A stretch of 64,000 nucleotides of DNA from Macrostomum lignano (GCA_002269645.1 NIVC01002822.1:1-64000), one strand, 5' to 3'; positions 4,973 to 63,810 are shown, numbered from the stretch's first letter. The notes: a model not told the origin generated them from the sequence alone. A program made the numbers and translations.

Positions 4973-6085
4973 ATGCAATATTCAGGTGAGCACAATCCTG
5001 AAACATTGTCTCATGTCATTTTTCACGCAATTATCGCAAAGCCAGCTCCCTCAGCTAAGCCAATCATTCCTAACTTTCCAGCCCGCGCTCTACTCGCCGT
5101 CCTCCTCGTCTGGCTGGCTCCTCGGCCGACCCGCTGCGACTGCCAGCGAGGTTGGCGCCGTCTGCAGACGAAGAGCTGTCTGAGCGACTCGCTGGCGCTG
5201 TGGACGAGACCCTCCGGCTCCGTCCTCGACTGCGTGCTCGAAGCCGAGCGCTCGAGCGGCCTTCTGGTGGCCCAGTTCGACTCGGACACTCGCCAGTGCT
5301 CGCTCTTCCAATACACCGCAGTGTGCCACCTCATCGATGGACTCGCTGCTGCAGAGAGCTCGAAGTCCCGCCGCTGTGCCGCATTCGCCAATGACAGAGC
5401 CGCCAAGTTCCTCACCTTGAGCAGGAAGCTCATGCTGGATGTGGGCTCGAAGCTGAGGGCCGCCTGGGTGATGAGCGACGATGCGGACGCCAGCAGGAGC
5501 AACTTGGTGTGCGGCCAGACGCAGCAGTGGATGTCGGAGAATGTGGAGTGGAGCAGCGAGGGAGCCAAGCTCGACGGAGTGTCGTCCAAGATGTGGCTGG
5601 AGAACGTGGAGCTCGCGAGCGTGCAGCAGAGACTCACGTGGCTGGTCAGGCTCAAGCGGACTGTCCGGAAGGAGGCAACGCTGCTCGAATCCTACAACTG
5701 CGACTCCACGGCTTTGAACGCAGCCTTTTGGGACGGCTGGACAGGCGGATGGGGCCTGTACTTCTTCAGGGTATCTTCATCTTACTTTGAGTACTTCACA
5801 CCATCTGTAACGAACTCGTTTGACGCGAATGGATTCGTTGAGGTCGGCATCAGTTCGGCGTCTCCGTCAAGCCGCGACTTCTTCTCCAACTTCGCGTTCG
5901 TGCCGCAGTCTGTTGTGAGCGCTGGTCCTCAGCGTAACGCAGCCGTGTCAACATGCCGCTGCATCCGCTTGGGATTTAGACCTGCCGACTCGCGAATGTT
6001 GAACGGCACAGTGCAGTCGGTGGCCATCATGAACGACACGATGACGGAGGCTGAGATCCGCAGCTTCTTCGGCCTGGTACGCTGA
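4973..6085 (+). CDS. Secreted PAN/Apple-like + LamG/ConA-like protein, copy 1; join(4973..4985,5082..6085), 338 aa
   Basis: ATGCAATATTCAG|gtgag...ctttccag|CC; removing the 96-nt phase-1 intron gives the signal peptide MQYSARALLAVLLVWLAPRPTRC. Cys pattern SVLDC...FDSDTRQCSL is PAN-like. LRAAWVMSDD...GAKLDGVSSKM...GTVQSVAIMNDTMTEAEIRSFF resembles the Laminin_G_3/ConA-like profile (recognised by eye). Confidence 0.85.
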   Translation: MQYSGEHNPETLSHVIFHAIIAKPAPSAKPIIPNFPARALLAVLLVWLAPRPTRCDCQRGWRRLQTKSCLSDSLALWTRPSGSVLDCVLEAERSSGLLVAQFDSDTRQCSLFQYTAVCHLIDGLAAAESSKSRRCAAFANDRAAKFLTLSRKLMLDVGSKLRAAWVMSDDADASRSNLVCGQTQQWMSENVEWSSEGAKLDGVSSKMWLENVELASVQQRLTWLVRLKRTVRKEATLLESYNCDSTALNAAFWDGWTGGWGLYFFRVSSSYFEYFTPSVTNSFDANGFVEVGISSASPSSRDFFSNFAFVPQSVVSAGPQRNAAVSTCRCIRLGFRPADSRMLNGTVQSVAIMNDTMTEAEIRSFFGLVR

Positions 6086-7449
6086 CCTGCCAGCCGCTCG
6101 GTTAATGCAAACTTACCAACTAAACAATTCAATGCACCGATGTTTTCTAAAAAACGACGTCCTTTTAGCACTGAAGAGTTTCCTTCTGTTGTGCCCGGCT
6201 GCATCTATCTACACCGATGAGCAATCTTTGTCTTTTGGTCAGTTGGGCCGGGGATTGCGCTCTAACCACTCCTGCCGCGTTTGCATATCCCACCCCTAAT
6301 CGTCTGGATTGGGGTTGGGTTTATTGTATCATTTTGGAGGGGTTTTTAGGGGGGGGTCCACCAATGAAGCCAAATTGCTGCACGCTTAAAACTTCTATGG
6401 CCAAACCACACTGAGAAATCACTTCAGCAAAAATCTAAGCGAGCCAGAATCTCAACTCAGTCAATAGGCCTGCGAACAAAAGATAGCAAGCACGTAGGAC
6501 ACCTGTTGAAGAATGGATCATTTTGGTCCATTTGGTCCATTCGGTCTATTCGGTCCATTTGGTCAATTTCGGGTCCAGAAGGGATCAATTCGGTCAAAGT
6601 AGCGGCGTTACTTTTCCAAATCCTGTCTCCAAAGCACAGAACGGTTTCACGGAGCCACCTGACTTGAACGTTGGCGGTGGTGGCTTTGAATTAAAAATTG
6701 GCCCTTCCGAAACGTTGATCCTCGATGATAGTGATTCCACAGACACGAAGGTAGATAGCGGAATAGACCAGCTCAAGCGGTAATCAATGAAGCAGGCGCA
6801 TAAAATCCGCCATCAATCTTGCGTAAGCGTAGAAGATGCGCAAACCTGGATGTTGAAAATCGGCTGTCGCCGGATCGCAGGAGTAGCTGTTGCTTAGGAG
6901 AACCTCGCTAAACTTACGAAGTACCAATTTTCTCGGACTAGAACAGACCGGCGTATTGCCCAATTGCATAATATCCATTTCATTGATCTCAGCGGAGGAG
7001 CTTCAACTTCATCGGCGTCCAATTGAATGAGATCCTCAAGCGTGCATTGCATTGCGGACTCTCGCTCAACTCTTTCGCCCAACTGGGAACTCGAAGCTCC
7101 AACAACGTCACCTTGCGACGCGTGCAATAGTCCGATACGAGTGCCGGTTGTTGAATCCAAAATTTAAGCCATTTGCCTTTGGTTGCAGTCGCGCGTTGAG
7201 CTATAGCTAAGCTATGAACCTTCTGCTACATATTTGACTTACAACTTCATGTTTACACTTTCTATTTTGGACCATAGACACTACCATAGATAGATAAGAC
7301 CAAGTATTTTGAGCGTGCAACAATGCATCATTGCCCAAACTGATGGTTTCACGCTTTAAATATCAATGGTCCAAACGCCTTCAAAATCATACAATATCGG
7401 TGAAGAACGGCTATTCATGCACCAATTGTTTATTTGATATCCAGCTCTG

Positions 7450-7692
7450 ATTGGCCGGACTGGCCGACACGCGCTCCCATTCCCAATTACTAGCCTCCGT
7501 GCCAAGTTGGATAGGCTAGTATGTACGCGCTTGTTGTCAGCCAGTCGTCAGTCGGAAGAAATCTATGAGCCTAGAGATTTGAGGGGTTATTTGATGAAAT
7601 ACGATCGTATACGTATATAAATGAGCTGGCGGTGGGCGAGGGAGAGCGTGCTGCTGAGTTCGGACTCGGCGACACAATGGGCTATAGTAAGC
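7450..7692 (+). promoter_or_regulatory. Putative Pol II promoter (CCAAT + TATA) with downstream splice donor
   Basis: ATTGG at 7450-7454, TATATAAA at 7614-7621, gtaag at 7687. The same arrangement occurs in the paralogous unit. Confidence 0.4.
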
Positions 7693-9999
7693 CAAAGCTT
7701 CAAGTTCAAGTTAATAAAGATATTTTAATAAAAGCCCGCTGCCTCGCTCTACCTAGATTTTTGGCCGAAGTATCAAAGAAGAACAATTATTGAGTATTCT
7801 CTGTTCCTTCCGTGGGAGACGCTGCCACTCTGGACACTGAATCTGATAAGATTAGGGACGGGCTGATCAAGTCCCTAGACATGACCTTACGCTCAGTAAT
7901 CGAAGTCAGTCCGGCCAGCGGACTGAGGCGATCTCGGGCCCGTCGGCTGAAGAGTCCAACCAGTTAGTTTCGATCAGGCCGTGCCGCAACACTTCGATAA
8001 TTCTGCGTGACTTTTCTTGCATTCAGTATTTTGGGCTTATGCTCATCAACGACTAATTGTGCGATAAGTTACTTTCGAAGTCCTTAGGGTGCATGTGAAG
8101 ACTTAATGCTTCGTGTTCAAGGCCAATTTGCAGCTAGTCTGTGCTTGGGAGATTTCGGATTCTTTACTTACTTTGACTGTGTTTAAAAGGTCAAACTAAT
8201 CAGGATTGATCGATCAGAAATGACATGTCCCGCGCCTTTTACTCGTGTTTATTTCCTTTGATTTATAGCATGCATGCGCAGCACTCGGCAAAGATGACAA
8301 ATCTGGGTAAAGAAGTATGGAGTGAATGTTGAATTCAGACGCAAACACACTTAACTACCACTAAGAGTAAAGGTAGCTGCAATGCTGAATTTAATGACCG
8401 TTGAGTTGTGGTGCTACTCTCCCGCTGAATAGCAATTTTGAAGGGCAAAATGTGAGTAGTGAGTTGGATCAATTTCACCAAGTAGCCAGTTTAACAAATT
8501 CAGCATGGCGAGGGTAACGCACAGTACGACGTTAAAACAGCTCTATAGTGGTTAGTGCGAGAAACCAAAAGTATTGAGCTCTGAGCTCACTAGACGACTT
8601 TTATATTTTTGGTACAAGCGAACGTAAGAATAATTGATGCATAAAAGCACAAGGGGTTTTAAAAGAACGCACACACTAGTCACGCTCAATGAAGCATTGT
8701 CAGTCAATCGATAAAATAAAACAGCGAGTGTACTCAATGTACACCCGCTGAGTCACGCGATACGACAGACGTGGCGAGCAAAATCTCTGATTGGCAGTGA
8801 CGCCTGCAGGCTGATGCTTCTGCGTGCTGGAGGCACATAACAATAAATAAAAATAATAGATAAAAAAGTTTACATACCAGAGCAGGTGTGCAAATTTCAG
8901 TACATTTTAATAACAATTATAATGGCACTGCAGTTTTGCTTGATCAGTATAAGAAACATCATCTATCCAGCATCTTTGTGGTCTTTAAATTGCAAAAAAA
9001 TTGAAAATTGAGAAACATCAAAGTACGCGTGTACGAATATACGAGCTAAGTCTAATAACTCTGTGAATTATTGATGCATTCACATGTGCATAAGTGAATG
9101 GAGTTTGACCACTCTAAAAGAAGCTCCGGCTCCTTGTATCACACGAAGTATAAAAGCAAGCAAGCAGTATGTGCATTTCCTCTATGCCCCTGCCTCATCC
9201 TGCACGGAAACCGTGACTCATGGCCGTTTACCTTGTGTCTCGATGCTAGCTAAAGAAGGTCCTGCATTAGCGAAGCTGCATTGCTGGGGTTGATGCCAGT
9301 GTAAATATCTTAGAAAAAAATGCGGGTAAACATAGAACGCATAAAACTGACGCCCAATGCTTCGTGGTGATGTATCGGATGCAAACACCATCAAACGCGC
9401 TTGAATTGCTAAGTTGTCTTCACTACTTTTTTAGCAGACTTGGCACCGGAGAATCAGCCGTGAGATGAGTTGCAGAATCGCTTGAGCGAAGCAGCTAATG
9501 GAGTTTATTTTAAAAAGTAGAAAGGAATCCACAATCCAGTGAGCACCGTCACTATAATGCATTTGATCGACACTCGATCCCAGAACCTGCGGTGGATGCG
9601 ATATTTGCGTCACGAATGCCTTGCTGGATCACTAGTTTGTTCTACCACCTGAAGAGAAAGTCTTCAGTGCAGTTGGTTTCTTTCAAGTTAAAGAAAACAT
9701 CGACGAGGGACTTCTTGGCTAGACTAATTCTGCACTCAGAAATGGTGCAAAAATATGAATCAATTAAAAATCTTCTTGATGGGAAGTGTTTCTCAGTAAC
9801 TTTCCATGAGCATCCTGCTGAAGAAAAAAATGGAGCTAGGCTTCTGGATTGCAAAAGGATTCTTCATTGTTTGGGATTGCCGGATGACTGTGGTGTCAGC
9901 GGTTACTGTGGCGTCAGCAGCGACTGTGGACAAGTCAGACATACATGCAGTCATAATTAATCTGTTCATTGGTACAAGTTAGATGCCACGACCTCCAAG

Positions 10000-10407: not shown

Positions 10408-11516
10408 ATGCAATATTCAGGTGAGCAGAATCCTGAAACATTGTCTCATGTCATTTTTCATGCAATTATCGCAATTCCAGCTCGCTCAGCTCAGCCGGTC
10501 ACTTTCCAGCCCGCGCTCTACTCACCGTCCTCCTCGTCTGCCTGGCTGCTCGGCCCGCCCGCTGCGACTGCCAGCGAGGTTGGCGCCGTCTGCAGACGAA
10601 GAGCTGTCTGAGCGACTCGCTGGCGCTGTGGACGAGACCCTCCGGCTCCGTCCTCGACTGCGTGCTCGAAGCCGAGCGCTCGAGCGGCCTTCTGGTGGCC
10701 CAGTTCGACCCGGACACTCGCCAGTGCTCGCTCTTCCAATACACCGCAGTGTGCCACCTCATCGATGGACTCGCTGCTGCAGAGAGCTCGAAGTCCCGCC
10801 GCTGTGCCGCATTCGCCAATGACAGAGCCGCCAAGTTCCTCACCTTGAGCAGGAAGCTCATGCTGGATGTGGGCTCGAAGCTGAGGGCCGCTTGGGTGAT
10901 GAGCGACGATGCGGACGCCAGCAGGAGCAACTTGGTGTGCGGCCAGACGCAGCAGTGGATGTCGGAGAATGTGGAGTGGAGCAGCGAGGGAGCCAAGCTC
11001 GACGGAGTGTCATCCAAGATGTGGCTGGAGAACGTGGAGCTCGCGAGCGTGCAGCAGGGACTCACGTGGCTGGTCAGGCTCAAGCGGACTGTCCGAGTCG
11101 CGGCAACGCTGCTCGAATCCTACAACTGCGACTCCACGGGGGATCGAGGCGCGGCGTTTTGGGACGGCTGGACAGGCGGATGGGGCCTGTACTTCTTCAG
11201 AGTCGCTTCATCTTACTTTGAGTACTTTACACCATCTGCCACGAACTCGTTTGACCCGAACGGATTTGTTGAGGTCGGCGTCACTTCGGCGTCTCCGTCA
11301 AGCCGCGACTTCTTCTCCAACTCCGCGTTCGTGCCGCAATCCAGTTTGAATCATGGTGATGAGCGTAACGCAACCGTGTCGACATGCCGCTGCATCCGCT
11401 TGGGATTTCGACCTGGCGACTCGCGAATGCTGAACGGCACGGTGCATGCGGTGGCTTTCATGAACGACACGATGACGGAGGCTGAGATCCGCAGCTTCTT
11501 CGGCTTGGTGCGCTGA
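10408..11516 (+). CDS. Secreted PAN-like + LamG/ConA-like protein, copy 2; join(10408..10420,10510..11516), 339 aa
   Basis: Same ATGCAATATTCAG|gtgag exon. The 89-nt intron (not a multiple of 3) must be removed to join the signal peptide MQYSARALLTVLLVCLAARPARC to the 10662-11516 ORF, which supports the intron. Confidence 0.85.
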
Positions 11517-14760: not shown

Positions 14761-14930
14761 CAAAGTTGGTACATCTCTTCGCTGTGCCCCTGTAAAAAAC
14801 CGGCCTCATCTTGCAGGGAGACCCTGACTCATGGCCATAACCTTGCGTGTCCTGATGTTAGCTAAATAAGGCCCTGCATTAGCGAAGCTGCGTTGCTAGA
14901 GCTGATGCCAGTAAAAAATTTAGAAAAAAA

Positions 14931-16977
14931 TTGAAGGTAAAAACAGGATACATAATAACTGATACTCAGTGCTTCATGGGTGATGCATCGGATCAAACAC
15001 AAAAATTGCAGGTAAACATAGGATACATAATAACTGATACTCAGTGCTTCATGGGTGATGCATCGGATCAAACACAAAAATTGCAGGTAAACATAGCATA
15101 CATAATAACTGGTACTCAGTGCTTCATGGGTGATGCATCGGATCAAACACAAAAATTGCAGGTAAACATAGCATACATAATAACTGATACTCAGTGCTTC
15201 ATGGGTGATGCATCGGATCAAACACAAAAATTGCAGGTAAACATAGCATACATAATAACTGATCCTCAGTGCTTCATGGGTGATGCATCGGATCAAACAC
15301 AAAAATTGCAGGTAAACATAGGATACATAATAACTGATCCTCAGTGCTTCATGGGTGATGCATCGGATCAAACACAAAAATTGCAGGTAAACATAGGATA
15401 CATAATAACTGATACTCAGTGCTTCATGGGTGATGCATCGGATCAAACACAAAAATTGCAGGTAAACATAGGATACATAATAACTGATACTCAGTGCTTC
15501 ATGGGTGATGCATCGGATCAAACACAAAAATTGCAGGTAAACATAGCATACATAATAACTGATCCTCAGTGCTTCATGGGTGATGCATCGGATCAAACAC
15601 AAAAATTGCAGGTAAACATAGGATACATAATAACTGATCCTCAGTGCTTCATGGGTGATGCATCGGATCAAACACAAAAATTGCAGGTAAACATAGGATA
15701 CATAATAACTGATCCTCAGTGCTTCATGGGTGATGCATCGGATCAAACACAAAAATTGCAGGTAAACATAGCATACATAATTACTGATACTCAGTGCTTC
15801 ATGGGTGATGCATCGGATCAAACACAAAAATTGCAGGTAAACATAGCATACATAATTACTGATACTCAGTGCTCCATGGGTGATGCATCGGATCAAACAC
15901 AAAAATTGCAGGTAAACATAGCATACATAATTACTGATACTCAGTGCTCCATGGGTGATGCATCGGATCAAACACAAAAATTGCAGGTAAACATAGGATA
16001 CATAATAACTGATACTCAGTGCTTCATGGGTGATGCATCGGATCAAACACAAAAATTGCAGGTAAACATAGGATACATAATAACTGATACTCAGTGCTCC
16101 ATGGGTGATGCATCGGATCAAACACAAAAATTGCAGGTAAACATAGGATACATAATAACTGATACTCAGTGCTTCATGGGTGATGCATCGGATCAAACAC
16201 AAAAATTGCAGGTAAACATAGCATACATAATAACTGATACTCAGTGCTTCATGGGTGATGCATCGGATCAAACACAAAAATTGCAGGTAAACATAGGATA
16301 CATAATAACTGATACTCAGTGCTTCATGGGTGATGCATCGGATCAAACACAAAAATTGCAGGTAAACATAGGATACATAATAACTGATCCTCAGTGCTTC
16401 ATGGGTGATGCATCGGATCAAACACAAAAATTGCAGGTAAACATAGCATACATAATTACTGATACTCAGTGCTTCATGGGTGATGCATCGGATCAAACAC
16501 AAAAATTGCAGGTAAACATAGCATACATAATTACTGATACTCAGTGCTCCATGGGTGATGCATCGGATCAAACACAAAAATTGCAGGTAAACATAGCATA
16601 CATAATTACTGATACTCAGTGCTCCATGGGTGATGCATCGGATCAAACACAAAAATTGCAGGTAAACATAGGATACATAATAACTGATACTCAGTGCTTC
16701 ATGGGTGATGCATCGGATCAAACACAAAAATTGCAGGTAAACATAGGATACATAATAACTGATACTCAGTGCTCCATGGGTGATGCATCGGATCAAACAC
16801 AAAAATTGCAGGTAAACATAGGATACATAATAACTGATACTCAGTGCTTCATGGGTGATGCATCGGATCAAACACAAAAATTGCAGGTAAACATAGGATA
16901 CATAATAACTGATACTCAGTGCTTCATGGGTGATGCATCGGATCAAACACAAAAATTGCAGGTAAACATAGGATACA
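14931..16977. repeat. 60-bp tandem array, left arm (~34 units)
   Basis: Unit ggtaaacataggatacataataactgatactcagtgcttcatgggtgatgcatcggatcaaacacaaaaattgca-type, with a few biallelic positions. Confidence 0.97.
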
Positions 16978-19804
16978 TCTTCTAATCTTCTAATCTTCTA
17001 ATCTTCTAATCTTCTAATCTTCTAATATATCTTCTAATCTTCTAATATATCTAAAGTAGCAACCCCCCCCCTCCACCGGCCCTGTCTGTCTGTGGGTATG
17101 TAACAGGTTATCTCCCAAAAGGCTCAACCGATTTTCTCCGTTTCTTCGCCAAAAGATGTCAAATGTGCCCGGGACGGTACATGTAATTTTATTAAGCTCT
17201 AGCTCAATGCTAAGGGGATTAAATATTCGAAAAACTGTTTTAAATGGCCTTTTTAGTGTATTTTTTTATCAGCCTGCGCGCAGCGAGAAACTTCACAGCC
17301 AATTTTAATGATTGCGCCAGAGCCAACTGATAAGAAAATTCACTTTGCCCCACTGCCCAGATAATTACTCTATTTAACTTGCGTAACCAATTAAGGGGGG
17401 GGGGGTATAATAAAAATTCTGGATGCTTTCCAATATACTAAAAATCAAAACTATGTACCTATAGGAACCTTCGCTTAACTTCACTCTACATGGTCGGAAT
17501 TTCGTGGGGTTTTCTGCATTCGATGCGTATTGATGGTGCGCTGGTACACAAAATTTTGCTAAGAAATTGCTTTATTTTTTCGGGCTTAAATATTCGAAAA
17601 ACTCGATTTTTACCCCGTTTTTTAAAGTTCAAACAGTTCTTTCCGATTGAGAAGCAGTCTGACTGCCGATGGAATTGTATTGCATCATAACTCAGTGCCA
17701 ACTATAGCATTGGTTCTCTACACTCGCGTGGAGAGCTACAAGCGTTGAAAGGTTGCGCAACACATTTTAGATACTGAAATTGAGGGGCGGGTGTCGCTAT
17801 TCAATTAGTCCTGGGCATTGGCTTGGTTGTTAATTTTAATGGATCAACTTGCAGGCCTCTCACTGTAACTGGCGCTGAATGTACACCTTTATGAATTTGA
17901 ATGCTTTAAAGCAGGAATGTTCAATTGTTATTTTTGCTTCGAGTTTTTCACTTTCAGAAGAGAGCCTTGTATTGCTGGAAAGAGCTAGAAACGCTGAGTT
18001 CGGGAATATAATTTGTTTGCTGAGATTCGAAAAATGAAAAGCACAGCATTAAAAAGAAGATTTCTATGCATTTTACTATATATACTCATTGTACACTCTC
18101 CCATAACGCAAACCCCTACTTTATCGCAACTCCACAATTCAAACCAGCGCCATTGGATTTCAATTTAGATTGCGTAACCATATTGTTGACTTTAATTGTT
18201 GACTTTAATAATTGAAACTGATATTGACTGCCTGAGAAATTGATTATGTCATAACTTGCTTCGAGCGATTTCTACTCTATGCTTGGAGTTTTCAGTGTTG
18301 AAATATATAAGTGCTAAAATTCATAGTGCTAAATTCAGAGAGCTAGCCTAGAAGTGAACAGACTGAACTGCTAATGCAGCGACGTGGGTTCGAATTTTTA
18401 GAGTGTAAAAGTTTTTTCTTAAAAATTTTAATTTCAAGACAGTTGAAGGAAACTTTAAAAAACGTCAAATAAATCAGATAAAAGAGAAGAAGCTACGAGC
18501 GTTCATGTAGTGTATTCGAAAATTCTTATTAAACTTTAACTTTTGAAAAGGATTATTGCACTAGATAAGAAATTAATTATTGTACGAGTACTAGCTGAGG
18601 AAATTTTCTTACTATCTTGCTTGGGGTACTTTATATCAGGGGATGCTTGCTATCGGAAGGACGCTTGCTCTTAGGGATGCTTGCTCAGGGGAGATTGCTG
18701 AGATGCCAAGACTTACTGGGGAATTATTCAAATATGCAGGCTTACTGGGGGAATTACTGAGATGTCAAAGGCTTAAAACGGACTTGCTGAGATGCCAAGG
18801 CTTAAGAGGAAATTGCTGAGATTTCAAGGCGTGGGGGAATCTCTGAGATGTCAAGGCTTTGGACGCCTTGATAGCTAAGATTTCAAGACTTACCGGGGGG
18901 AATAACTGAGATATAAAGGCTTACGCAGGGAATTACTGAGATGTGAAGGCTTGGGGAGGTATCGCTGAGATAGCAAGGCTTTGGATGGGGAGAAATTGCT
19001 AAGATGTCAAAACTTACTGGAGGAATCACCGAGATATAAAGGCTTACTTGGAGGACTGCTGAGATGTCAAGGCTTGGGGAAAATTTATGAGACGTCAAGT
19101 CTTGGGGGTTCCTGAAATTTCAAGTCTTGAGAGCGAATTGCTGAGATAACAAAGCTTAAGAGAGAATTACTGAGGTGTCAAGCTTGGGGGAAATTGTTGA
19201 GATGTCAATTCTTGGGGGGGGGATTCTATGGATTGGAGATTCTTTCCACAAGGGCTGCTTCTAATGGATATCTTTAGATAGGTGATTCATTGGGAAATTC
19301 CTTCGATGGGGGATTCTTTCGATGGAGGGTTCTTTGAATGGGGGGTTCTTTAGATGAATGATTCATTCGATAAAGGGATCCTTTTGGATATGGCATTGTT
19401 TGGACGGGGATTCTTTAGATGAGTCTTCGGATAGGGGTTTCTATAAATGGGAGGTTTTTTGGATGGGGTATTCTTTGCATGTGAGATTCTTTGTATCGTG
19501 GATTCTTTGGATGGGAGATTCAGTTGGGTTAAATTTTATTGTGTAAGAAAACTGTGGTTGGAGTTTGGACGAAAAGCCCAAACGGGGGTTGGAATTGGCT
19601 AGCTGAGGAAATTGTTTCACTAATCTTGCTGGGGGTACTTTCTATCAAGGGATGATTGCTATCAGAAGGACGTTTTCTCTTGGGGGATGCTTGCTCGGAA
19701 TAAAATTCTAAGATGTCAAGATTTACAGGGGAATTATTGAGATACATGTATAAAATCTTACCTTAAGAGAGACTTGCTGAGATGCCAAGGCTTGTGAGGG
19801 GAAT

Positions 19805-20340
19805 TGCTGAGATTTCAAGTCTTAGGGGTAAACTGCTGAGATGTCAAGTCTTAGGGGTAAACTGCTGAGATGTCAAGTCTAAGGGGTAAACTGCTGAGAT
19901 GTCAAGTCTAAGGGGTAAACTGCTGAGATGTCAAGTCTTAGGGGTAAACTGCTGAGATGTCAAGTCTTAGGGGTAAACTGCTGAGATGTCAAGTCTAAGG
20001 GGTAAACTGCTGAGATGTCAAGTCTTAGGGGTAAACTGCTGAGATGTCAAGTCTTAGGGGTAAACTGCTGAGATGTCAAGTCTAAGGGGTAAATTGCTGA
20101 GATGTCAAGTCTAAGGGGTAAACTGCTGAGATGTCAAGTCTTAGGGGTAAACTGCTGAGATGTCAAGTCTTAGGGGTAAACTGCTGAGATGTCAAGTCTT
20201 AGGGGTAAACTGCTGAGATGTCAAGTCTTAGGGGTAAACTGCTGAGATGTCAAGTCTTAGGGGTAAACTGCTGAGATGTCAAGTCTTAGGGGTAAACTGC
20301 TGAGATGTCAAGTCTTAGGGGTAAATTGCTGAGATGTCTA
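19805..20340. repeat. 26-27-bp tandem array inside the Helitron
   Basis: (ctgctgagatgtcaagtcttaggggtaaa)n. Confidence 0.95.
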
Positions 20341-20999: not shown

Positions 21000-21500
21000 T
21001 TGGACGGGGGTTTTTTAGATGAGGGGATTCTTTGGCCAAGAATTCTATTGATAGGGGAATTATTTGGATGGGAGATTCTTTGGATTATTTGTATGGGGAT
21101 TATTTGGACGGGGTTCTTTAGATGAGGAAATTCTTTGGCCAAGAATTCTATTGATAGGAGGATTATTTGGATGGGAGATTCTTTGGATTCTTTGGATGGG
21201 GATTATTTGGACGGGGTTCTTTAGATGAGGAAATTCTTTGGCCAAGAATTCTATTGATAGGAGGATTATTTGGATGGGAGATTCTTTGGATTATTTGTAT
21301 GGGGATTATTTGGACGGGGTTCTTTAGATGAGGAAATTCTTTGGCCAAGAATTCTATTGATAGGAGGATTATTTGGATGGGAGATTCTTTGGATTCTTTG
21401 GATGGGGATTATTTGGACGGGGTTCTTTAGATGAGGAAATTCTTTGGCCAAGAATTCTATTGATAGGAGGATTATTTGGATGGGAGATTCTTTGGATTCT
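21000..21500. repeat. 103-bp tandem repeat inside the Helitron
   Basis: ttctttggccaagaattctattgatagg recurs every 103 bp. Confidence 0.9.
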
Positions 21501-50181: not shown

Positions 50182-51173
50182 TCGAGTTGTCTCTGGCGGA
50201 GTCGACACGGCTGACCTACGAGTCTGTCTGGCGAGCCTGGTGTCGTTTCTGTCAAGGGCTAAATGAACGACCTGAGCAGCCCATGGTGGAGCTTCTCGTT
50301 CTCTACCTGTCCAACATCTCTCTTCGCCTACTTTCGTTCAACAGTGTTCAGCTTCATCTGCAAGCGTTGAGCTGGTATTGCCGCTGCCTTGGTCTTGACA
50401 AAGTCGCGCGAGCTCCAATTCTGCCACTCATCCTAAAAGGAATCAGACGGGACCTAAGCAAGTCGTGGACCCCAGCCACTAAGCAACCACTCCGGCTGGA
50501 GCATCTGATGCGCATTCGCCAGCACCTGCTGCTGTCAGATCCGGCAGATGCTGCTCTGTGGGCTCTCGTGCTCACGGGCTGGTTCGGCATGCTTTGCCTC
50601 GATAATCTGTGCGCCCGCAAGAAATTGGGTGACTCGGCGAGCGCGATAAGGTTATCTGATGTCAAGTTCAGCTGCGCTGGTGTTACCATCTTTGTAGCCC
50701 ATTCAAAGACAGTGCAGTTCGGTGAGCGCATTCACACCATCCAGCTCCCGGTCATGGGCCCGAGCTCAGCAGCTGCTCTCAGATTGTGTCCTGTGGCTGC
50801 GCTCCGACATCACTGGCAGCTGAATTGCCTTTTTGATGCGTCTCACAGTCTGCCCATATTCTCAGTTTCATCAGCGCCGCAATCCTGGCGGCCTCTGACT
50901 CAGCGGGGGGTTCGCCACCGCCTGCATCGCCTGTTCTGCAAGGCCGGACTGGAAGCTTCTAGCTTCTCGGCGCACTCGCTCCGGCGTGGTGGAGCAACGT
51001 TTGCTTTCAATGTTGGGTTGAGCGTGGACCGCATCAAGCTGCTAGGAGATTGGTGCAGCTCGGCGGTTTCGCAGTATATCTCTGATGGCAATGCCGGTAA
51101 CCTAGCGGCCTGTCAATCTATGTCTGCTTGCCTTGGCTCCTACTGTTCATCATTTGCCTCCTCTCCCCTCTGA
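50154..51173 (+). CDS. Ngaro tyrosine recombinase ORF
   Basis: SAM-like N-terminus (LAESTRLTYESVWRAWCRFC), HSKT, HSLRRGGAT and GDW...QY; the first catalytic Arg position reads Cys (GMLCLDNL). Confidence 0.9.
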   Translation: MRRLQAARLIELSLAESTRLTYESVWRAWCRFCQGLNERPEQPMVELLVLYLSNISLRLLSFNSVQLHLQALSWYCRCLGLDKVARAPILPLILKGIRRDLSKSWTPATKQPLRLEHLMRIRQHLLLSDPADAALWALVLTGWFGMLCLDNLCARKKLGDSASAIRLSDVKFSCAGVTIFVAHSKTVQFGERIHTIQLPVMGPSSAAALRLCPVAALRHHWQLNCLFDASHSLPIFSVSSAPQSWRPLTQRGVRHRLHRLFCKAGLEASSFSAHSLRRGGATFAFNVGLSVDRIKLLGDWCSSAVSQYISDGNAGNLAACQSMSACLGSYCSSFASSPL

Positions 51174-54428: not shown

Positions 54429-55360
54429 TCAAGGCGACCGCACCAGAACGAAGAAGCTGCTGATCTCAGCCTCCGTCATCGTGTCGTTTATGATGGCCAC
54501 CGCCTGCACTGTGCCGTTCAGCATTCGCGGGTCACCAGGTAGAAATCCAAAGCGGATGCAGCGGTATGACAACACGGTTGCGTTGCGCTCATCACCACGG
54601 TCCAAACTCGCCTGAAGCATGAATCCGGAGTTGGAGAAGAAGTCGCGGCTTGACGGAGACGCCGAAGTGACGCCGACCTCAACGAATCCATTCGGGTCAA
54701 ACGAGCTCGTGGCAGATGGTGTGATGTACTCAAAGTAATATGAAGCCACCCTGAAGAAGTACAGGCCCCATCTGCCAGTCCAGCCGTCCCAAAAAGCAGC
54801 GCCCGATCCCCCGTGGAGTCGCAGTTGTAAGATTCGAGCAGCGGTGCCTCCACTCGGACAGTCCGCTTGAGCCTGACCAGCCACGTGAGTCCCTGCTGCA
54901 CGCTCGCGAGCTCCACGTTCTCCAGCCACATCTTGGACGACACTCCGTCGAGCTTGGCTCCCTCGCTGCTCCACTCCACATTCTCCGACATCCACTGCTG
55001 TGTCTGGCCGCACACCAAGTTGCTCCTGCTGGAGTCCGCATCGTCGCTCATCACCCAGGCGGCCCTCAGCTTCGAGCCCACACCCAGCATGAGCTTCCTG
55101 CTCAAGGTGAGGAACTTGGCGGCTCTGGCATTGGCGAATGCGGCACAGCGGCGGGACTGCGAGCTCTCTGCAGCAGCGAGTCCATCGATGAGGTGGCACA
55201 CTGCGGTGTATTGGAAGAGCGAGCACTAGCGAATTTCCGAGTCGAACTGGGCCACCTGCAGGCCGGTCGAGGCGTCGTAGAACTGGACGAACTTGATGAT
55301 GCACTTGCTGATGCTGATCGGAGTCTTGATTGCCGTAGAGCAATAGCCAGCCCTCTCTAT
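54429..55360 (-). pseudogene. PAN-like + LamG-like copy 4, pseudogene
   Basis: TAG at 55228-55226 where other copies have CAG; 1-nt deletion near 54805; divergent 5' end with no clear start. Confidence 0.88.
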
Positions 55361-55429
55361 TATTATATGATGGCTCGTTTCTGCCTGTTTTAAAAACTGC
55401 CAGCCAAGAATGAAGGAAGCTTTACACTA

Positions 55430-56850
55430 AAACTTTTTTAGCATCTTTTCATTCCAAAGCTGGGCTTCTAAAAGCCAGCAGCCTCCAGACTGCTCCATAA
55501 TCGTATGCTGCTCCGTGAGTTTTCAGTAGTAACTCACACTTTGCTAGGCCACATTATGGAAGTATGATTTAAATTTGACTTTCTTTTTTCTCTTTTTGCT
55601 TTTAAAATCAGTCATCATTGACAAGTTTCATATTGTGATTGATGTTTGATGAGCACAACAGATTCGATGTACGAGCTTGCTGTCAAATGTAGAGCGATAT
55701 CTGTACGAGTGTAGTACATGTAGCTGCTAAAGAGCAGTGTCAGATAGCACACATGGTGGATACCTCCACGCGCAGACGGGCGTTGAGGGTGTCCGATCTC
55801 ACTCTACGCCTCATCTGACTCTCAACGTACTTTTACAGAATTCTATACCTTGCCTCAATAAAACACACTTCCTTCATGTGCAACTCCGAAGTGCAGAAGA
55901 TGGGACATTGGGAATGGCTCACCTTCTCCATGGCTTGTACTTACCTGGCACATGCATGCCAGTACATGTAACGCATATGCACCTGGCTGGAGTTTTTGGT
56001 ACTGCTTAACATCAAGGGCGACAGTAGACACGCATGCAGCGATACGCCAACCTCATGCGCGCTCACCGTACCCTCAGGGCTGCCCTAATGGGCTTAAGTT
56101 TCTGTACGCAGACCCCAGTTAATGTGGCTGCGTACGGACTCGAACCCAGGTGGTGCCTTGTAGAACTCGTTAGTTGATTGCATGGCTTATGTCGCAATGC
56201 TGTTTGGGTTTGTGAAAAGCTTCAAAACGAAACCTGCTGGCTGCGGCTTCTTAGCGATTTTTTCATGCTGAGGGCTGGCAGCTGCAGAGTGCGGAGGGGG
56301 AGCCGCTGCTTTCCCACCTCCCCATGCCAATGCGTGCCCCTCATGCCATTCTCAACTGTCCCTCAACTCAAACTGAAAGTTGCACGGCGGGATGCCAATT
56401 AGTCCATGAGAGCAGCTCCAACCTGCTGCAAAGCGGAACGCTTGAGCACTCTTCTCATGCGATTTTTAACTGGCAGTGTAAAAAAATCATGAATGCCTAT
56501 AAAAATAGCCAATATTTGGTCAGTTTAAGCCACTGCCAGCAACAAGGGACAAGCCCAGCTTCAGACTTGCTTCTTTCTGAAGCTCCCACGTTTATTTTAA
56601 TTCCATGTACTGCTCTCAATTCTCCTCCCCATGCTGCTACCTATGCTCCCTATACTGTTCTCTATGCTCCCCATACTGCTCCCTATACTGCTCCCTATAC
56701 TGCTCCCTATACTGCTCCCTATACTGCTCCCTACACTGCTCCCTATACTGCTCCCTATACATACCGCAGCCAATTTTGTGTACATCTTGGTTGCGAATAC
56801 ATATCAGGCCTCAAAATGACAGCGAGTTGCTTTGATTTGATTGAAGTTTA
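55430..56850. repeat. Segmental-duplication block upstream of copy 4, paralogous to ~59465-61975
   Basis: aaagctgggcttctaaaagcc...cctccagactgctcc at ~55457 and ~59485, with collinear similarity continuing to the tgctttgattt end. Confidence 0.85.
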
Positions 56851-57634: not shown

Positions 57635-58669
57635 TCAGGGCAACCGCACCAAACCGAAGAAGCTGCTGATCTCAGCCTCCGTCATCGTGTCGTTCATTAC
57701 GGCCACCGCCTGCACCGTGCCGTTAAGCATTCGCGAGTCGGAATGTCGAAATCCCAAGCGGATGCAGCGACATGTTGGAATCTCAGTTTCATTATGGCTA
57801 CTGGTTAGAGTTACATTCGACTGCGGCACGAACCCGGAGTTGGAGAAGAAGTCGCGACTTGACGGAGATGCAGAAGTGATGCCGACCTCAACAAATTCAT
57901 CCGGGTTAAAGAAGTTTGTTGAAGCAGCTGTTATGAACACAGAATAGTTTGGAGCTTTCCTAAAGAAGTACAAACCCCGCGTATTAGGATATCCGTCCCA
58001 GAAGGCGGCCCCTATTAGACCTGAGACGCAGCTGTAACTCTCGAGCAGCGTTGCCTCTACTCGGACAGTCCGCTTGAGCCTGATCAGCCACGTGAGTCCC
58101 TGCTGCACGCTCGCGAACTCCACGTTCTCCAGCCACATCTTGGACGACACTCCGTCGAGCTTGGCTCCCTCGCTGCTCCACTCCACATTCTCCGACATCC
58201 ACTGCTGCGTCCGGCCGCACACCAAGTTGCTCCTGCTGGCGTCCGCATCGTCGCTCATCACCCAGGCGGCCCTCAGCTTCGAGCCCACACCCAGCATGAG
58301 CTTCCTGCTCAAGGTGAGGAACTTGGCGGCTCTGGCATTGGCGAATGCGGCACAGCGGCGGGACTGCGAGCTCTCTGCAGCAGCGAGTCCATCGATGAGG
58401 TGGCACACTGCGGTGTACTGGAAGAGCGAGCACTGGCGAGTGTCCGAGTCGAACTGGGCCACCAGCAGATTGCTCGTGGCGCCGTAGAACAGGGCGACCA
58501 GGATGAGGCACTCGCTGATTCCGGATGGAGTTTCGGCCACCTGCACCGCCTGGACCTCAGGTAAGCACTGCGGCAGTTCGAGTCTCTGCCACTGGCCAGA
58601 AGAGCTGTCGCAGGAGATCAACTGGACGCAGCAGAGCAGGATCAGAGCGCAGCCTGTAATTAGTTGCAA
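57635..58669 (-). CDS. PAN-like + LamG-like copy 5; intact frame, start codon absent at the homologous position
   Basis: Uninterrupted ORF. ATT ACA GGC (58660-58652) aligns to ATG GCA GGC of copy 6. Signal-like GCALILLCCVQLISC. Confidence 0.8.
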   Translation of the reverse strand: MQLITGCALILLCCVQLISCDSSSGQWQRLELPQCLPEVQAVQVAETPSGISECLILVALFYGATSNLLVAQFDSDTRQCSLFQYTAVCHLIDGLAAAESSQSRRCAAFANARAAKFLTLSRKLMLGVGSKLRAAWVMSDDADASRSNLVCGRTQQWMSENVEWSSEGAKLDGVSSKMWLENVEFASVQQGLTWLIRLKRTVRVEATLLESYSCVSGLIGAAFWDGYPNTRGLYFFRKAPNYSVFITAASTNFFNPDEFVEVGITSASPSSRDFFSNSGFVPQSNVTLTSSHNETEIPTCRCIRLGFRHSDSRMLNGTVQAVAVMNDTMTEAEISSFFGLVRLP

Positions 58670-58749
58670 GAAGTTTGTTGTTTAATTCCATGTCCGCTAA
58701 ATTAATTCAGTTTGATGGTTCACAGGGCTGCTTAAGGCACTGCCGTAAA

Positions 58750-58979
58750 TTAAGAGCGACAGACGACCTGAGACCAGCTACTCATAATCGGTTTTTCCTT
58801 ATTTCGGCGCGGCCACTTGCACTATACTTGCCCTGGAGACCAGCCTTCATGGGTGAATCGCACGATAAGCGATGTGCCGATTTCTGTGCACAGACCCCAA
58901 TCGTTGTGGCCGCGTACGGAATCGAACCCGGGCCAGGTACTTTATTTGTAAGACTCGTTACCGCTGAGCTAGCTTGCCC
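58750..58979 (-). mobile_element. tRNA-derived SINE-like element
   Basis: A box TAGCTCAGCGG (58971-58961) and B box GGTTCGATTCC (58928-58918) on -; no complete cloverleaf. Related heads at ~56120-56180, ~60240-60960 and 63900-63950. The 3' boundary is uncertain. Confidence 0.65.
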
Positions 58980-59704
58980 CTGCATGAGTGCTTACCTGAG
59001 CGCAGTTCATTGGTTGCTTGCATTGCTTCTGGTGCAATTGTGCCTGAGCGTAAAAAGCTTCAATAGCAGAAATACACTTGGCTGCAGCTTGCGGGCTCCT
59101 TGGCGCTTTTTTATGCTGAGGGCTGGGCTGGCAGCTGCAGAAGATTCTCAGATGAAGCAACAGGGAGGCCAAGCGCAGCCTTCCCGAACCCCCTCATGGC
59201 CGATGAGATGGGAGGTGGCCAATTGTGAGAAACTTTGTCTCCGTTTCCTCGGCAACCTACCGGGATGCAACGCTTGAGTAGTGCTTTGATTGCGACTTCC
59301 TATTTAATTAGCGAGTGAAAAATTCATGAATGCCATGGATTCGTGGATTCTGTAGAGCAATGTCTGTAGCCCTTACTATTATTTGAAGGCCCGTTTCCGT
59401 TTGTTTAGAAACTACCAGCCAAAGAGGCAAGCCTAGAATGAAGCAAGCTTCATTTATAAACTTTTTTTGCTTTTTTCATAACAAAGCTGGGCTTCTAAAA
59501 GCCAACAGCCTCCAGACTGCTCCATCATTGTATTCTGCTCCATAAGTTTTGCAAGTTGTGAAAAGTTAAGTAATTCACTATTTGTGAGGCCACAACACCA
59601 AAGTATAAATTCAATTTGACTTTCCACTGCTCTCTTTTTGTTTTCAAAATCTATCGTCATTAACAAGTTCCATATTGTGATTGATGTTTGATGAGCACCA
59701 CAGA

Positions 59705-59820
59705 TTCGGTGTACGAGCGTGCTGTCTAATGTTGAGCGATAGTTGTACGAGCGTGCTGTCTGATGTAGAGCGATAGCTGTACGAGCGTGCTGTCTGATGT
59801 AGAGCGATAGCTGTACGAGC
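59705..59820. repeat. 34-bp tandem repeat (~3 units)
   Basis: (gtacgagcgtgctgtctgatgtagagcgatagct)n. Confidence 0.85.
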
Positions 59821-60261
59821 TTAGTAGATACTAAAGAGCACTAAATAGCACTGTGCCAGATAGCACACTTGGTTGGTGCCTCCACGCGCTGGTTGGCTGG
59901 CGAGGGTATTCGATCTCATTCTACTCTCACTCTACGCCTCATCCAACTCTAAATGCACTTTTATAGAATCCTGTAATACCTCGCCTCAAAAAAGCACACT
60001 TGCTTTATTTGCAACTAGGAAGTGCAGAATGTGATAATACATAGTGAATGAGTTTACCTCACCTCCATGGCTCAAGTACTTATCTGGCACATGCATGCCA
60101 ATACATGTAGCGCACATGCACCTGGCTAGAGTTTTTCGTACTGCTTAACATCAAGAGCGACAGTTGACACGCACGAAGAGAAACGCCAAGCTTATGCGCG
60201 TGCACCGTACCCTCAGGGCTGCCCCTAGTGGGCTGGAATTTCTGTGCACAGACCCCAATTA

Positions 60262-60932
60262 ATGTGACCATGTACAGAATCGAAGATGTGACCATGTACA
60301 GAATCGAAGATGTGATCATGTACAGAATCGAAGATGTGACCATGTACAGAATCAAAGATGTGATCATGTACAGAATCGAAGATGTGACCATGTACAGAAT
60401 CGAAGATGTGATCATGTACAGAATCAAAGATGTGATCATGTACAGAATCGAAGATGTGATCATGTACAGAATCGAAGATGTGACCATGTACAGAATCGAA
60501 GATGTGACCATGTACAGAATCGAAGATGTGACCATGTACAGAATCGAAGATGTGACCATGTACAGAATCGAAGATGGGACCATGTACAGAATCGAAGATG
60601 TGACCATGTACAGAATCGAAGATGTGACCATGTACAGAATCGAAGATGTGACCATGTACAGAATCGAAGATGTGACCATGTACAGAATCGAAGATGTGAC
60701 CATGTACAGAATCGAAGATGTGACCATGTACAGAATCGAAGATGTGACCATGTACAGAATCGAAGATGTGACCATGTACAGAATCGAAGATGTGACCATG
60801 TACAGAATCGAAGATGTGACCATGTACAGAATCGAAGATGTGACCATGTACAGAATCGAAGATGTGACCATGTACAGAATCGAAGATGTGACCATGTACA
60901 GAATCGAAGATGGGACCATGTACAGAATCGAA
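60262..60932. repeat. 24-bp tandem array (~28 units)
   Basis: (atgtgaccatgtacagaatcgaag)n. Confidence 0.98.
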
Positions 60933-61414
60933 CCCAGGTGCCTTGTAGTACTCGTTAGTTTTAGTTACTTGAATTGCGTTTGTCGCAAATGAGTTCAAGT
61001 TTTTGAAAAGCTTCAAAACACACCCGCTTGCGGCTTCTTAGCGACTGGCAGCTGCAGACTGGGGGAGACGGCTGCTTTCTCACACTTCTTATGCCACCGA
61101 TGTCAGTGGAAAAAACCTCCAGTTATCTCGGCATCTTCTTACTTGTTAATACACTTTTCAGAACTAAACTCAAATTGTAAGTTTCAATCAGTCCATTGGG
61201 AAGCCAGTCAGTCCATGGGAGCAGCTCCAAACTGCTGCAGTGCGCAACGCTTGAGAAATCTTCTCATTCGATTTCTAACTGGCAGTGTAAAAAATTTATG
61301 AATGCTGATAACAATAGCCAATTCTGTCAGTTCAAGGCACCGCCAGCAGCAGAGGCAAGCCCGGCTGGAAACGAATGTGTTTCTGAAACTCTCTAATTTC
61401 TTGTATTTAAATGC

Positions 61415-61885
61415 ACTGCTCTCTATGCTTTCTATCCTGCTCCCTATGCTCTCTATCCTGCTCCCTATGCTCTCTATCCTGCTCCCTATGCTCTCTATCC
61501 TGCTCCCTATGCTCTCTATCCTGCTCCCTATGCTCTCTATCCTGCTCCCTATGCTCTCTATCCTGCTCCCTATGCTCTCTATCCTGCTCCCTATGCTCTC
61601 TATCCTGCTCCCTATGCTCTCTATCCTGCTCCCTATGCTCTCTATCCTGCTCCCTATGCTCTCTATCCTGCTCCCTATGCTCTCTATCCTGCTCCCTATG
61701 CTGCTCCTTATGCTCCCTATGCTGTTCCCTATACCCTCTATACTGCTCCCTGTGCTGCTTCTTATGTTCCCTTTACTGCTCCTTATGCTCCCTATACTGC
61801 TCCCTATACTGCTCACAATGCTGCTCCCTACACTGCTCCCTACACTGCTCCCTACACTGCTCCCTGTACTGCTCCCTATGCTGCC
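61415..61885. repeat. 21-bp array grading into 12-bp units
   Basis: (tgctccctatgctctctatcc)n then (tgctccctacac)n; the paralogous shorter 12-mer run is at 56620-56765. Confidence 0.95.
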
Positions 61886-62574
61886 CCCTGAGCTGTTGAG
61901 TACGTCTGAGTTGCAAATGCACATTGTTGGTCTCAAAAAACAGCAAGGTGCTTTGATTTTATCGATGTTTTAAAACGTACCGATTCAGTAGGTATTAAAC
62001 TTTTAATGCAAAAGTGAAACAGGAATATTATGAATAGAAGCAGTGCTGCTTATTTAAAATTAGAGTCACTAATCCTCAGATCAGCTCTGAAAGATGAAGC
62101 GAGGCTCAACTTCCAGGTCATTTAAGAAGATGTTGAAAAGTCTACTTTTTATAGTAGTAGTTAGGACTTTTGCTACAATATTGCGATCCGCTTGATTTCC
62201 ATCCTTTAATTCTATTACAGAAAAGTCGTGCTTTACGCATGACACCTTGGCGTCTCTCCCTGACCTCACGGCCTCATCTGATGGCAGGATGAAATCGAGC
62301 CTTCGTCCATCATTACGCTCCTAAATCCTACCCCTTACCCTCCCAGAAAGGATAACCTACTCGTAGTTTGAAGGGGGTGAGGTTCACAACACCCAAATCT
62401 TTATCCATGATGCCACACAAGTGCGTACTCGCACACTGCATGCCATTTCGATATATTGTTCGCTCGTATTTGTACGGAAGTCTACAGTTTGTAGACTTGG
62501 CTTGTCTTCGGCTCACATAAGTTTCAGGTAACTCCCACTCCAACAATTAAAAGTAACTCAATCAGTTCAGTACT

Positions 62575-63592
62575 TCAGGGCGACCGCACGAGGCCGAAGA
62601 AGCTGCGGATCTCAGCCTCCGTCCTCGTGTCGTTTATGATGGCCACCGCCTGCACCGTGCCCTTCAGCATTCGAGAGTCGCCAGGTCGAAATCCCAAGCG
62701 GATGCAGCGGTATGTCGACACGGCGCCGTTACGCTGAGGAAGATCGCGCACAGCAGACCGCGGCACGAACCCGGAGTTGGAGAAGAAGTCGCGGCTCGAC
62801 GGAGACGCTGAAGTGATGCCGACCTCAACGAATTCATTCGGGTCAAACGAGTTCGTGGCAGATGGTGTGATGTAGTCAAAGAAAGATAAAGCCACCCTGA
62901 AGAAGTACAGTCCATATCCACCCGTCCAGCCGTCCCAAAACGCCGCGCCCAAAGCCGTGGAGTCGCAGTTGTAGGATTCGAGCAGCGGTTTCTCTCTCGG
63001 GGACTCCCGCTTGAGCCTGACCAGCCACGTGAGTCCCTGCTGCACGCTCGCGAGCTCCACGTTCTCCAGCCACATCTTGGACGACACTCCGTCGAGCTTG
63101 GCTCCCTCGCTGCTCCACTCCACATTCTCCGACATCCACTGCTGTGTCTGGCCACACACCAAGTTGCTCCTGCTGGCGTCCGCATCGTCGCTCATCACCC
63201 AGGCGGCCCTCAGCTTCGAGCCCACATCCAGCATGAGCTTCCTGCTCAAGGTGAGGAACTTGGCGGCTGTCTTTGGCGAATGCGGCACAGCGGCGGGGCT
63301 GCGAGCTCTCTGCAGCAGCGAGTCCATCGATGAGGTGGCACACTGCGGTGTACTGGAAGAGCGAGCACTGGTGAGTGTCCGAGTCGAACTGGGCCACCAG
63401 CTGGCCGGTCGAGTCTTCCGTGGACATGGCGAACAGGACGCAGTCGGAGACGCCGGATGGAGTTTCGTGCACCCGCACTGCTTGGGCCTCGGGCAGGCAC
63501 TGCGGCAATCCCAGATTCTGCCACTGGACAACCGAGCTGTCGCAAATAATCAGCTGGACGCAGCAGAGCAGAAGCAGAGCGCAGCCTGCCAT
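62575..63592 (-). pseudogene. PAN-like + LamG-like copy 6; single 2-nt frameshift (pseudogene or assembly error)
   Basis: ATG at 63592 with signal peptide MAGCALLLLCCVQLIIC, intronless. It reads gacagcc where other copies read gacagagcc/gccagagcc near 63268. Total 1018 nt. Confidence 0.8.
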
Positions 63593-63805: not shown

Positions 63806-63810
63806 ACACA

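Follow-up and report, generated by a model that had tools for sequence, protein, structure and literature searches.

Why should a short stretch inside a gene stay nearly uniform among paralogues when the sequence on both of its sides has drifted apart? The question is raised by the 64,000-nucleotide stretch NIVC01002822.1:1-64000 (Macrostomum lignano, GCA_002269645.1), here called the window, which carries six copies (c1 to c6) of an unnamed gene. The predicted product is a small two-domain protein, composed of a signal peptide, a Cys-rich PAN/apple-like module, a linker helix and a concanavalin A (ConA)-like jelly roll. In all copies an internal tract of this gene, the core, is almost the same. 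It is probable that interlocus gene conversion keeps the core homogeneous among the copies.

A near-identical core with abrupt edges

Exactly six copies were found in the window by blastn with the first open reading frame (ORF, 4973-6085) and by tblastn with the family proteins; further copies or fragments were not detected there by either search. The copies lie where the initial annotation had placed them, c1-c3 on the plus strand and c4-c6 on the minus strand, in convergent orientation. The six-member protein family described in that annotation must be qualified, however: the six copies are present, but c3, c4 and c6 are broken as assembled, and c1, c2 and c5 are the apparently intact ones.

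The core comprises 393 bp and reaches from the motif VAQFD to WLVRLKR. Its coordinates had been given correctly to the base (5267-5659 in c1, 58462-58070 in c5). Identity amounts to 96.3-99.0% in all 15 copy pairs, and the pseudogenes c3, c4 and c6 retain the core at 96-98%. To call it invariant, as had been done, is too strong, since 26 sites vary within the 393 bp. Most of these (20/26) are singletons, 16 of the 20 being GC-to-AT changes, and c1 matches the six-copy consensus at every variable site.

Both edges of the core are abrupt, as had been claimed: each falls within about 10-20 bp, and in sliding windows the identity level of the core is reached within about 30 bp. Between plus- and minus-strand copies, identity is about 0.4 in the N-terminal coding part, 0.96-0.99 in the core and down to 0.65-0.9 after WLVRLKR, so that divergence is not uniform along the gene. 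The N-termini of the two groups had been described as barely alignable. They are divergent, yet they can be aligned on a common Cys/Trp framework, with roughly 35-40% protein identity as counted from the alignment.

The contrast extends to the synonymous sites, as shown by Nei-Gojobori estimates of synonymous (dS) and nonsynonymous (dN) divergence. In the core, dS is 0.012-0.061 and dN 0.007-0.027; in the C-terminal part these values rise to 0.20-0.65 and 0.09-0.29, respectively. For the N-terminal part, compared between plus- and minus-strand copies, dS reaches about 0.9-1.2 (near saturation) and dN 0.72-0.86. Core dS is thus 10-50 times below flank dS, and protein-level selection alone cannot explain the core. 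The near-identity reported earlier therefore does include the synonymous sites, and it is far from matched in the flanks. Codon pairs that encode the same residue use the identical codon in 96-100% of cases in the core and in 64-92% in the C-terminal part, and third-position differences separate the two segments in all 10 pairs (Fisher p 3.7e-4 to 6e-14). The core dN/dS among copies is about 1. Together with the GC-to-AT singletons, this gives the core the look of a recently homogenised tract on which fresh mutations have begun to collect. The GC content at third codon positions (GC3) is 0.85-0.91 in the core versus 0.59-0.73 in the C-terminal part, which is compatible with GC-biased conversion, as such a process predicts this rise.

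Could purifying selection alone produce the same picture, with the core as the most constrained part of the protein and a strong codon bias that freezes its synonymous sites? The distant homologue P0002 has its lowest dN in the core (0.36, compared to 0.64-0.92 in the flanks), the TWLxRxKR, EG and NLV positions are invariant or nearly so across the family, and core GC3 is very high. Selection of that strength should, however, leave a core dN/dS well below 1. Moreover, the synonymous sites of the core are saturated between the window copies and a second organism that carries the family (dS about 1.15) and are thus not intrinsically frozen. The core is also retained in the pseudogenes c3, c4 and c6 and in a frameshifted copy elsewhere (L001, see below), and other conserved stretches of the protein, in its C-terminal part (FVEVGITSASPSSRDFFSN and MNDTMTEAEI), still show a proportion of synonymous differences (pS) of 0.1-0.23. 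Selection alone is therefore regarded as unlikely; it was already largely refuted by the comparison of core and flank dS.

Mosaic copies and a dispersed relative

The sequence around the core points in the same direction. The non-coding flanks of the duplication units are 76-88% identical (c1/c2 about 88% overall, c4/c5 76-80%), compared to 96-99% for the core. Over about 490 bp (c1 5131-5620), c1 and c2 do not differ at all. c6 is a mosaic: its N part has 69 sites in common with c5 versus 19 with c1, its C-terminal coding part 16 versus 77, and its 3' end and untranslated region 39 versus 3 (Fisher p about 1e-17 across the three segments). The C-terminal coding part of c4, like that of c6, resembles c1/c2, and the groupings backed by informative sites of the core and of the C-terminal part are mutually incompatible.

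A dispersed M. lignano copy, L001 (NIVC01000195.1), shows the same division. The 3' half of its core is 93-100% identical to the window copies (dS 0.02-0.065), while its C-terminal part is separated from theirs by a dS of 0.8-1.1. Apart from the family gene, the window and L001 have no sequence in common. The L001 copy is itself frameshifted, and the locus is either a pseudogene or carries an assembly indel. At this locus (L001 9741-10000), the protein model BOX15_Mlig033890g1 (P0001, 215 aa) is truncated, with recognisable but frameshifted N-terminal and 5'-core sequence lying upstream of it. Another M. lignano protein, P0003, is a patchwork of C-terminal motifs of the window copies with an identical core, which argues that the window belongs to the same or a sibling species.

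Gene conversion as the agent that keeps the core alike had been put forward in the initial annotation. The proposal is upheld by the dS gap, the diverged neutral flanks, the pseudogene cores, the mosaics and the raised GC3. Two other origins of such a pattern were weighed against it. The first is an artefact of assembly or polishing, in which reads of paralogues were mixed, so that their consensus came out uniform in the core. The genome is very rich in repeats, several of the copy indels could be long-read errors, and metagenome contigs of the family tend to break within the core. But polishing cannot raise an identity of 60-70% to 98%, the 26 variable sites are distinct and some of them specific to one copy, and the same core occurs in L001 as well as in UniProt models from another assembly (P0003, P0005). 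An artefact is thus most improbable.

The second is that whole genes were duplicated recently and their flanks then replaced, or that a mobile core cassette was lately inserted into unrelated genes. Either would account for a young-looking core (dS about 0.02) with sharp edges between old-looking flanks. The colinear N-core-C architecture shared by P0002 and P0004 shows instead that the core is ancestral and not an insert, and in the six-copy alignment, inspected by eye, repeats or target-site duplications were not seen at the edges. Replacement of the flanks from diverged paralogues would, for its part, be gene conversion or recombination itself and not a distinct mechanism. Both versions are very unlikely.

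Reach of the family and comparison with a second organism

Only 27 relatives were recovered by an exhaustive HMMER search of 1.84 billion cluster representatives, and the best protein match of the window gene is the hypothetical protein P0001 of M. lignano (70% identity). The 10 relatives that were looked up consist of six M. lignano UniProt models, several of them chimeric, and four short JGI/ENA environmental contigs. The latter derive from a second organism and not from M. lignano. With so few relatives, from these two sources, the family is lineage-restricted and uncharacterised. A profile search of the 90%-cluster protein collection, in which the number of candidates was capped, gave at least 3 proteins. 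A metagenome scan for the family returned only one contig, already among the known relatives, and a description of the family did not turn up in literature searches on Macrostomum gene conversion, genome assemblies, Mlig033890 and lectin-like secreted families.

The second organism allows the core to be compared within and between lineages. For core pS, the values are 0.01-0.06 among the window copies, 0.15-0.53 among the paralogues of the second organism and about 0.59 from one organism to the other. A core that is saturated between organisms, yet less diverged than the tail among the paralogues of each, looks like the classical signature of concerted evolution, and the saturation shows that the core is not an ultraconserved nucleotide element. 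The second-organism paralogues repeat the pattern of the window in a weaker form (pS of 0.15-0.53 in the core versus 0.61-0.88 in the tail), and their DNA homology ends at the same motif, WLLRLKR. Adjacent dimorphic blocks are present there in all four combinations.

A related but separate explanation is that an element acting at the nucleotide level, such as an antisense ORF, a structured RNA or a source or target of small RNAs, fixes the DNA of the core in this lineage only. Two antisense frames are stop-free across the 393 bp, and antisense ORFs of 120-223 aa are found in every copy (5023-5655, 10499-11083 and 25028-25579 on the minus strand; 54867-55229, 58074-58487 and 63011-63682 on the plus strand). 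The core is also shared with the dispersed L001 at 93-100%. Open antisense frames are, however, expected at a GC3 of 0.86, and in the core of the second organism they carry 2-10 stops. The antisense ORF was accordingly rejected as a cause of core conservation, being probably a by-product of GC3-rich codons that is not preserved in the second organism. A structured RNA was dropped as well: the core RNA folds no better than shuffled sequences (z +1.8, compared to -0.17 for the adjacent 393 nt), and Rfam at gathering thresholds gave no match in the whole window. In addition, deletions of 41 bp (c3) and 2 bp (c6) are tolerated inside the core. Taken together, a nucleotide-level element is quite unlikely.

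Two side observations concern the family elsewhere. Several of the JGI contigs L005-L008 start within a few bases of the conserved core block, as would happen where paralogues share sequence and a short-read assembly breaks off; this hints at near-identical core repeats there too. In the distant M. lignano paralogue models P0017, P0021 and P0024, the sequence stops or starts over exactly behind the (L/M)KR motif, P0017 being composed of two N-plus-core units in tandem. The motif lies at the 3' edge of the core (c1 5639-5659) and forms a dibasic R-x-K-R. This edge could reflect an exon boundary, a processing site or a mis-annotation. When considered as a proprotein-convertase site, the RLKR sequence was found to lie within a beta strand of the jelly roll in the AlphaFold2 (AF2) model (residues 192-200).

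Predicted structure of the product

The AF2 model of c5, built from a 17-sequence alignment, has a mean predicted local distance difference test score (pLDDT) of 79 and a predicted template modelling (TM) score of 0.75. Residues from about 130 to 344 form a jelly roll. Foldseek matches of this domain have E-values of 5e-8 to 7e-6, a probability of 1.00 and query TM scores of 0.39-0.49. At E <= 1e-3 there are 184 PDB matches, and the best 50 of these 184 are ConA-like domains, namely the lectin domain of the Trypanosoma cruzi trans-sialidase, the clostridial neurotoxin HCN/NTNHA domains and one GH43 arabinanase. In sequence, the jelly roll is only 9-14% identical to any solved structure, and the family profile has no match among PDB sequences. 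Laminin_G_3 (PF13385) scores below the Pfam cut-off of 27.6 bits in c5 (15.2) and c1 (13.9), although weak matches occur in 11/17 family members (best E 1.2e-5). The predicted fold is well supported by the structural matches, and the LamG/ConA-like fold that had been suggested from the sequence is thereby recovered in the model.

The N-domain was modelled separately (pLDDT 78). Its best Foldseek matches are nearly all PAN/apple modules, which agrees with the earlier label 'PAN-like', but they are weak (E 0.07-1, TM 0.35-0.47), and for none of the 17 members do the Pfam hits at E <= 1 include a PAN family. Cysteines are invariant at c5 positions 16, 35, 61 and 70 and nearly invariant at 87. A ligand-binding role of the family may be supposed.

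In the same model, the core (c5 residues 70-200) takes in the second half of the N-domain (strands 3-5), then the linker helix, and after it strands one to six of the jelly roll. Since it straddles two domains, constraint at the level of domains does not explain its limits, which favours a recombination tract over a selected module.

How the core may be kept uniform

The cluster is built of two older sub-arrays, c1-c3 and c4-c6, each of which grew by tandem duplication and which differ in their N-terminal type. Under gene conversion, recurrent non-reciprocal exchange between the paralogues would then overwrite the internal 0.39-kb tract, pseudogenes included, so that all copies end up about 98% identical in the core. 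The core may convert most often and most recently because it is the best-conserved part of the protein and hence offers the longest uninterrupted homology. The tract would stop where divergence starts, upstream of VAQFD and downstream of WLVRLKR, as mismatches beyond the core block the extension of heteroduplex; the flanks would thereby escape and keep diverging. Larger and older tracts occur too, as seen in the 490 bp at 100% in c1/c2 and in the c1/c2-like C-terminal coding parts of c6 and c4.

Several points weigh against this account or limit it. Conversion is read from the divergence pattern and the mosaics of one cluster, not from observed events. Distant homologues keep the core best at the protein level (dN 0.36 versus about 0.7), so purifying selection has a share in it, and synonymous sites could be conserved further by codon bias. 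For the second organism, the evidence comes from short metagenome or metatranscriptome contigs, which could be chimeric. Errors of assembly could account for some of the lesions in the pseudogenes; in c4, the missing base falls in a run of G. Finally, were the window and L001 from well-separated species, their near-identical core would suggest constraint at the nucleotide level. The best M. lignano match of a reverse transcriptase encoded in the window (see below), at 39% identity, is uninformative on this matter or speaks mildly against a shared species.

A more far-reaching variant would make the core the homology anchor of a cassette-shuffling system, in which c1, c2 and c5 swap variable segments with the silent c3, c4 and c6 and with dispersed copies, in the germline or even somatically. 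This is a long shot. It is likewise doubtful in the extreme that such shuffling creates new combinations of a bipartite binding surface (half PAN, half jelly roll) for the recognition of self and non-self or of mating partners. It would amount to a flatworm counterpart of pseudogene-templated diversification. In the second organism, the return of a layout with conserved core and hypervariable tail is compatible with this variant, as are the four block combinations.

The substitution rates of the variable parts bear on the same question. The initial annotation had seen a diversifying recognition family with an immune, allorecognition or reproductive role, for which no support was obtained. Overall, dN/dS in the variable parts is 0.3-0.7 (0.32-0.74 in the C-terminal part; 0.66 between c5 and c6 in the N-terminal part). 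Values above 1 were not reached for the variable segments as such; with sliding windows, no convincing excess over 1 was seen. Ratios of about 1-1.7 are confined to short stretches that hold few changes, and the places where about 1 is reached are the loop QSVVSAGPQRNAA and the sequence directly behind the core. These ratios fit relaxed constraint and site-specific diversification equally, and an arms race of recognition is not demonstrated.

If ordinary gene conversion is correct, the window shows intragenic concerted evolution of a free-living flatworm in a compact and well-delimited form. A tract of 0.39 kb that ignores domain limits would stay alike in intact genes, pseudogenes and one dispersed copy, whereas the protein diverges at both ends. 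The variable ends would make the family a candidate for rapidly evolving extracellular interactions. There is also a practical side. Short-read assemblies and gene models will break or fuse in the core, as shown by the chimeric P0003 and P0005 and the truncated P0001, and work that calls orthologues or scans dN/dS across Macrostomum species will go astray if the segments of the gene are not treated separately.

Gene models of the six copies

A two-exon structure is proposed for all copies. The plus-strand copies have a 13-nt exon 1 (ATGCAATATTCAG|GTGAGC), an intron of 89-96 nt and the acceptor TTTCCAG|. Splicing is deduced from CAG|GTGAGC...TTTCCAG| and from c2, whose reading frame is open only if spliced; MQYSARALL is then the start of the spliced product. 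c1 (4973-6085, plus strand) is apparently intact and yields a spliced product of 338 aa with a signal-peptide-like N-terminus. Its exon 1 (4973-4985) encodes MQYS plus a phase-1 G and is followed by a 96-nt GT..AG intron (4986-5081) and exon 2 (5082-6085, stop at 6083-6085). c2 (10408-11516, plus strand) is apparently intact after splicing, with exon 1 at 10408-10420, an intron of 89 nt at 10421-10509, exon 2 at 10510-11516 and the core at 10695-11087.

c3 (24760-25734, plus strand) is a pseudogene. It contains a duplicated 5' piece (24760-24986) with exon 1, the intron and the start of exon 2, and it is truncated at the 3' side, where homology stops at about 25734. The deletion in its core (25232-25583), noted already in the initial annotation, is real: 41 bp are missing after 25469, equivalent to c1 5505-5545.

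On the minus strand, c4 (about 54429-55312; core 55255-54863) is a pseudogene that lacks the N-terminal region and the signal peptide. It carries an in-frame TAG at 55228-55226 and, downstream of the core, lacks 1 bp in the aforementioned G run. c5 is apparently intact and occupies 57635-59023 when an upstream mini-exon is included (57635-58669 without it). This putative exon 1 (59023-58996, MQATNELRS + G) is proposed because it is conserved with c6 and has a GT donor; it would be followed by a 342-nt intron (58995-58654) and exon 2 (58653-57635), with the core encoding residues 70-200 of the ORF. The ORF of c6 (62575-63997 with the mini-exon, 62575-63592 without) is broken by a 2-bp deletion inside the core (63397-63007), between 63269 and 63268. 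Its putative exon 1 (63997-63970) encodes MQVANELHT + G, followed by an intron at 63969-63586 and exon 2 at 63585-62575.

The homologous mini-exons of c5 and c6, located 342-384 nt upstream, have a GT donor and the same intron phase as the plus-strand copies, and probably mark the start of the minus-strand copies. The initial annotation had started these at MAGCALLLL. As c5 has ATT at the position of the c6 ATG and the mini-exon with its GT donor is conserved, this stretch is probably the splice-acceptor region instead. With the mini-exon of c6 counted, the cluster extends to 63997 and not to 63592 as first given.

c1, c2, c5, c6 and P0002 have hydrophobic N-termini after a short charged or polar start and no C-terminal hydrophobic stretch, which suggests that the products may be secreted. 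The region upstream of c4 (55335-56850) is homologous to the c5-c6 spacer (59352-61970) at 71-80%, so the c4 and c5 units are tandem duplicates that include their flanks. Arrays of a 24-bp unit (60262-60932) and of a 21-bp unit (61416-61882) arose in the spacer later.

Surroundings of the cluster

Mini- and microsatellite arrays are extremely frequent in the window, whose DNA is eukaryotic. Two arrays of a 75-bp satellite on the same strand (14926-16978 and 22211-23759; 27 and 21 copies with 97-98% matches) bracket a 5-kb stretch of tandem repeats with units of 29-30, 94-125 and 103 bp (18797-21525), and short matches to the 75-bp unit occur downstream of c1 (9189-9388). From 27063 to 43485, unrelated minisatellite arrays (units of 15-70 bp) follow one another almost without a gap, with a strong strand composition skew. 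This run includes a 22-bp unit repeated 95 times (36895-38981), a 28-bp unit repeated 75 times (41360-43485), a 67-bp unit repeated 16 times (30042-31122) and arrays of 20 bp (33075-33970), 22 bp (34520-35423) and 21 bp (39318-40048). The long ORFs in this run were rejected as repeat artefacts, including a spurious MBTPS1_3rd hit (36953-38254).

Between the two sub-arrays lies a DIRS-like retroelement (48391-51173), which encodes the reverse transcriptase mentioned above together with RNase H in one ORF (596 aa). An overlapping downstream ORF has a sub-threshold match to the tyrosine recombinase family Phage_integrase (22.3 versus 27.1 bits). The closest proteins to the reverse transcriptase are 39% identical and come from environmental contigs and, in one case, from M. 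lignano.

Comparison with known systems

The phenomenon is of a known kind, namely ordinary concerted evolution; the gene family in which it occurs is unnamed and restricted to Macrostomum-type flatworms. The primate gamma-globin pair is the textbook case of paralogues that evolve in concert by interlocus gene conversion with bounded tracts. Here, as there, a delimited tract is nearly identical down to its synonymous sites and has sharp edges, diverged flanks, raised GC and mosaic phylogenies. In the window, however, the tract lies inside coding sequence and cuts through two protein domains, and its carriers are six copies in two orientations, three of them pseudogenes, and at least one dispersed copy.

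As to the predicted domains, the jelly roll places the protein near the ConA-like lectin/glucanase superfamily (Laminin_G_3), although its Pfam scores stay below the cut-off. In that superfamily, the residues of the binding site are not conserved across members. The modelled N-domain may resemble PAN/apple modules, such as those of the HGF N domain, leech antiplatelet protein and apicomplexan microneme proteins, in its length of about 85 residues, its strands packed on a helix and its conserved Cys. It differs by one additional helix (full-length model, residues 88-99) and matches them only weakly.

Recombining families of secreted polymorphic proteins are known from other invertebrates, namely the SmPoMuc of Schistosoma mansoni, the fibrinogen-related proteins (FREPs) of snails and Sp185/333 of sea urchins. 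Like the window family, these are lineage-specific and clustered, with alternating conserved and variable blocks; they are also secreted and their members exchange sequence, as is probable for the window family. They are not known to be related to it in sequence or fold, however, and the variable parts of the window family have a dN/dS below 1 overall.

In a last group of systems, conversion is templated by pseudogenes, as in the chicken immunoglobulin V pseudogenes, the variant surface glycoprotein (VSG) genes of trypanosomes and vls of Borrelia. The truncated, promoter-less c3 and c4 beside intact genes recall this arrangement, and the common segments could anchor an exchange of variable segments. 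In contrast to those systems, directional, programmed or somatic conversion is not evident here, and the pseudogenes of the window may be decaying duplicates.

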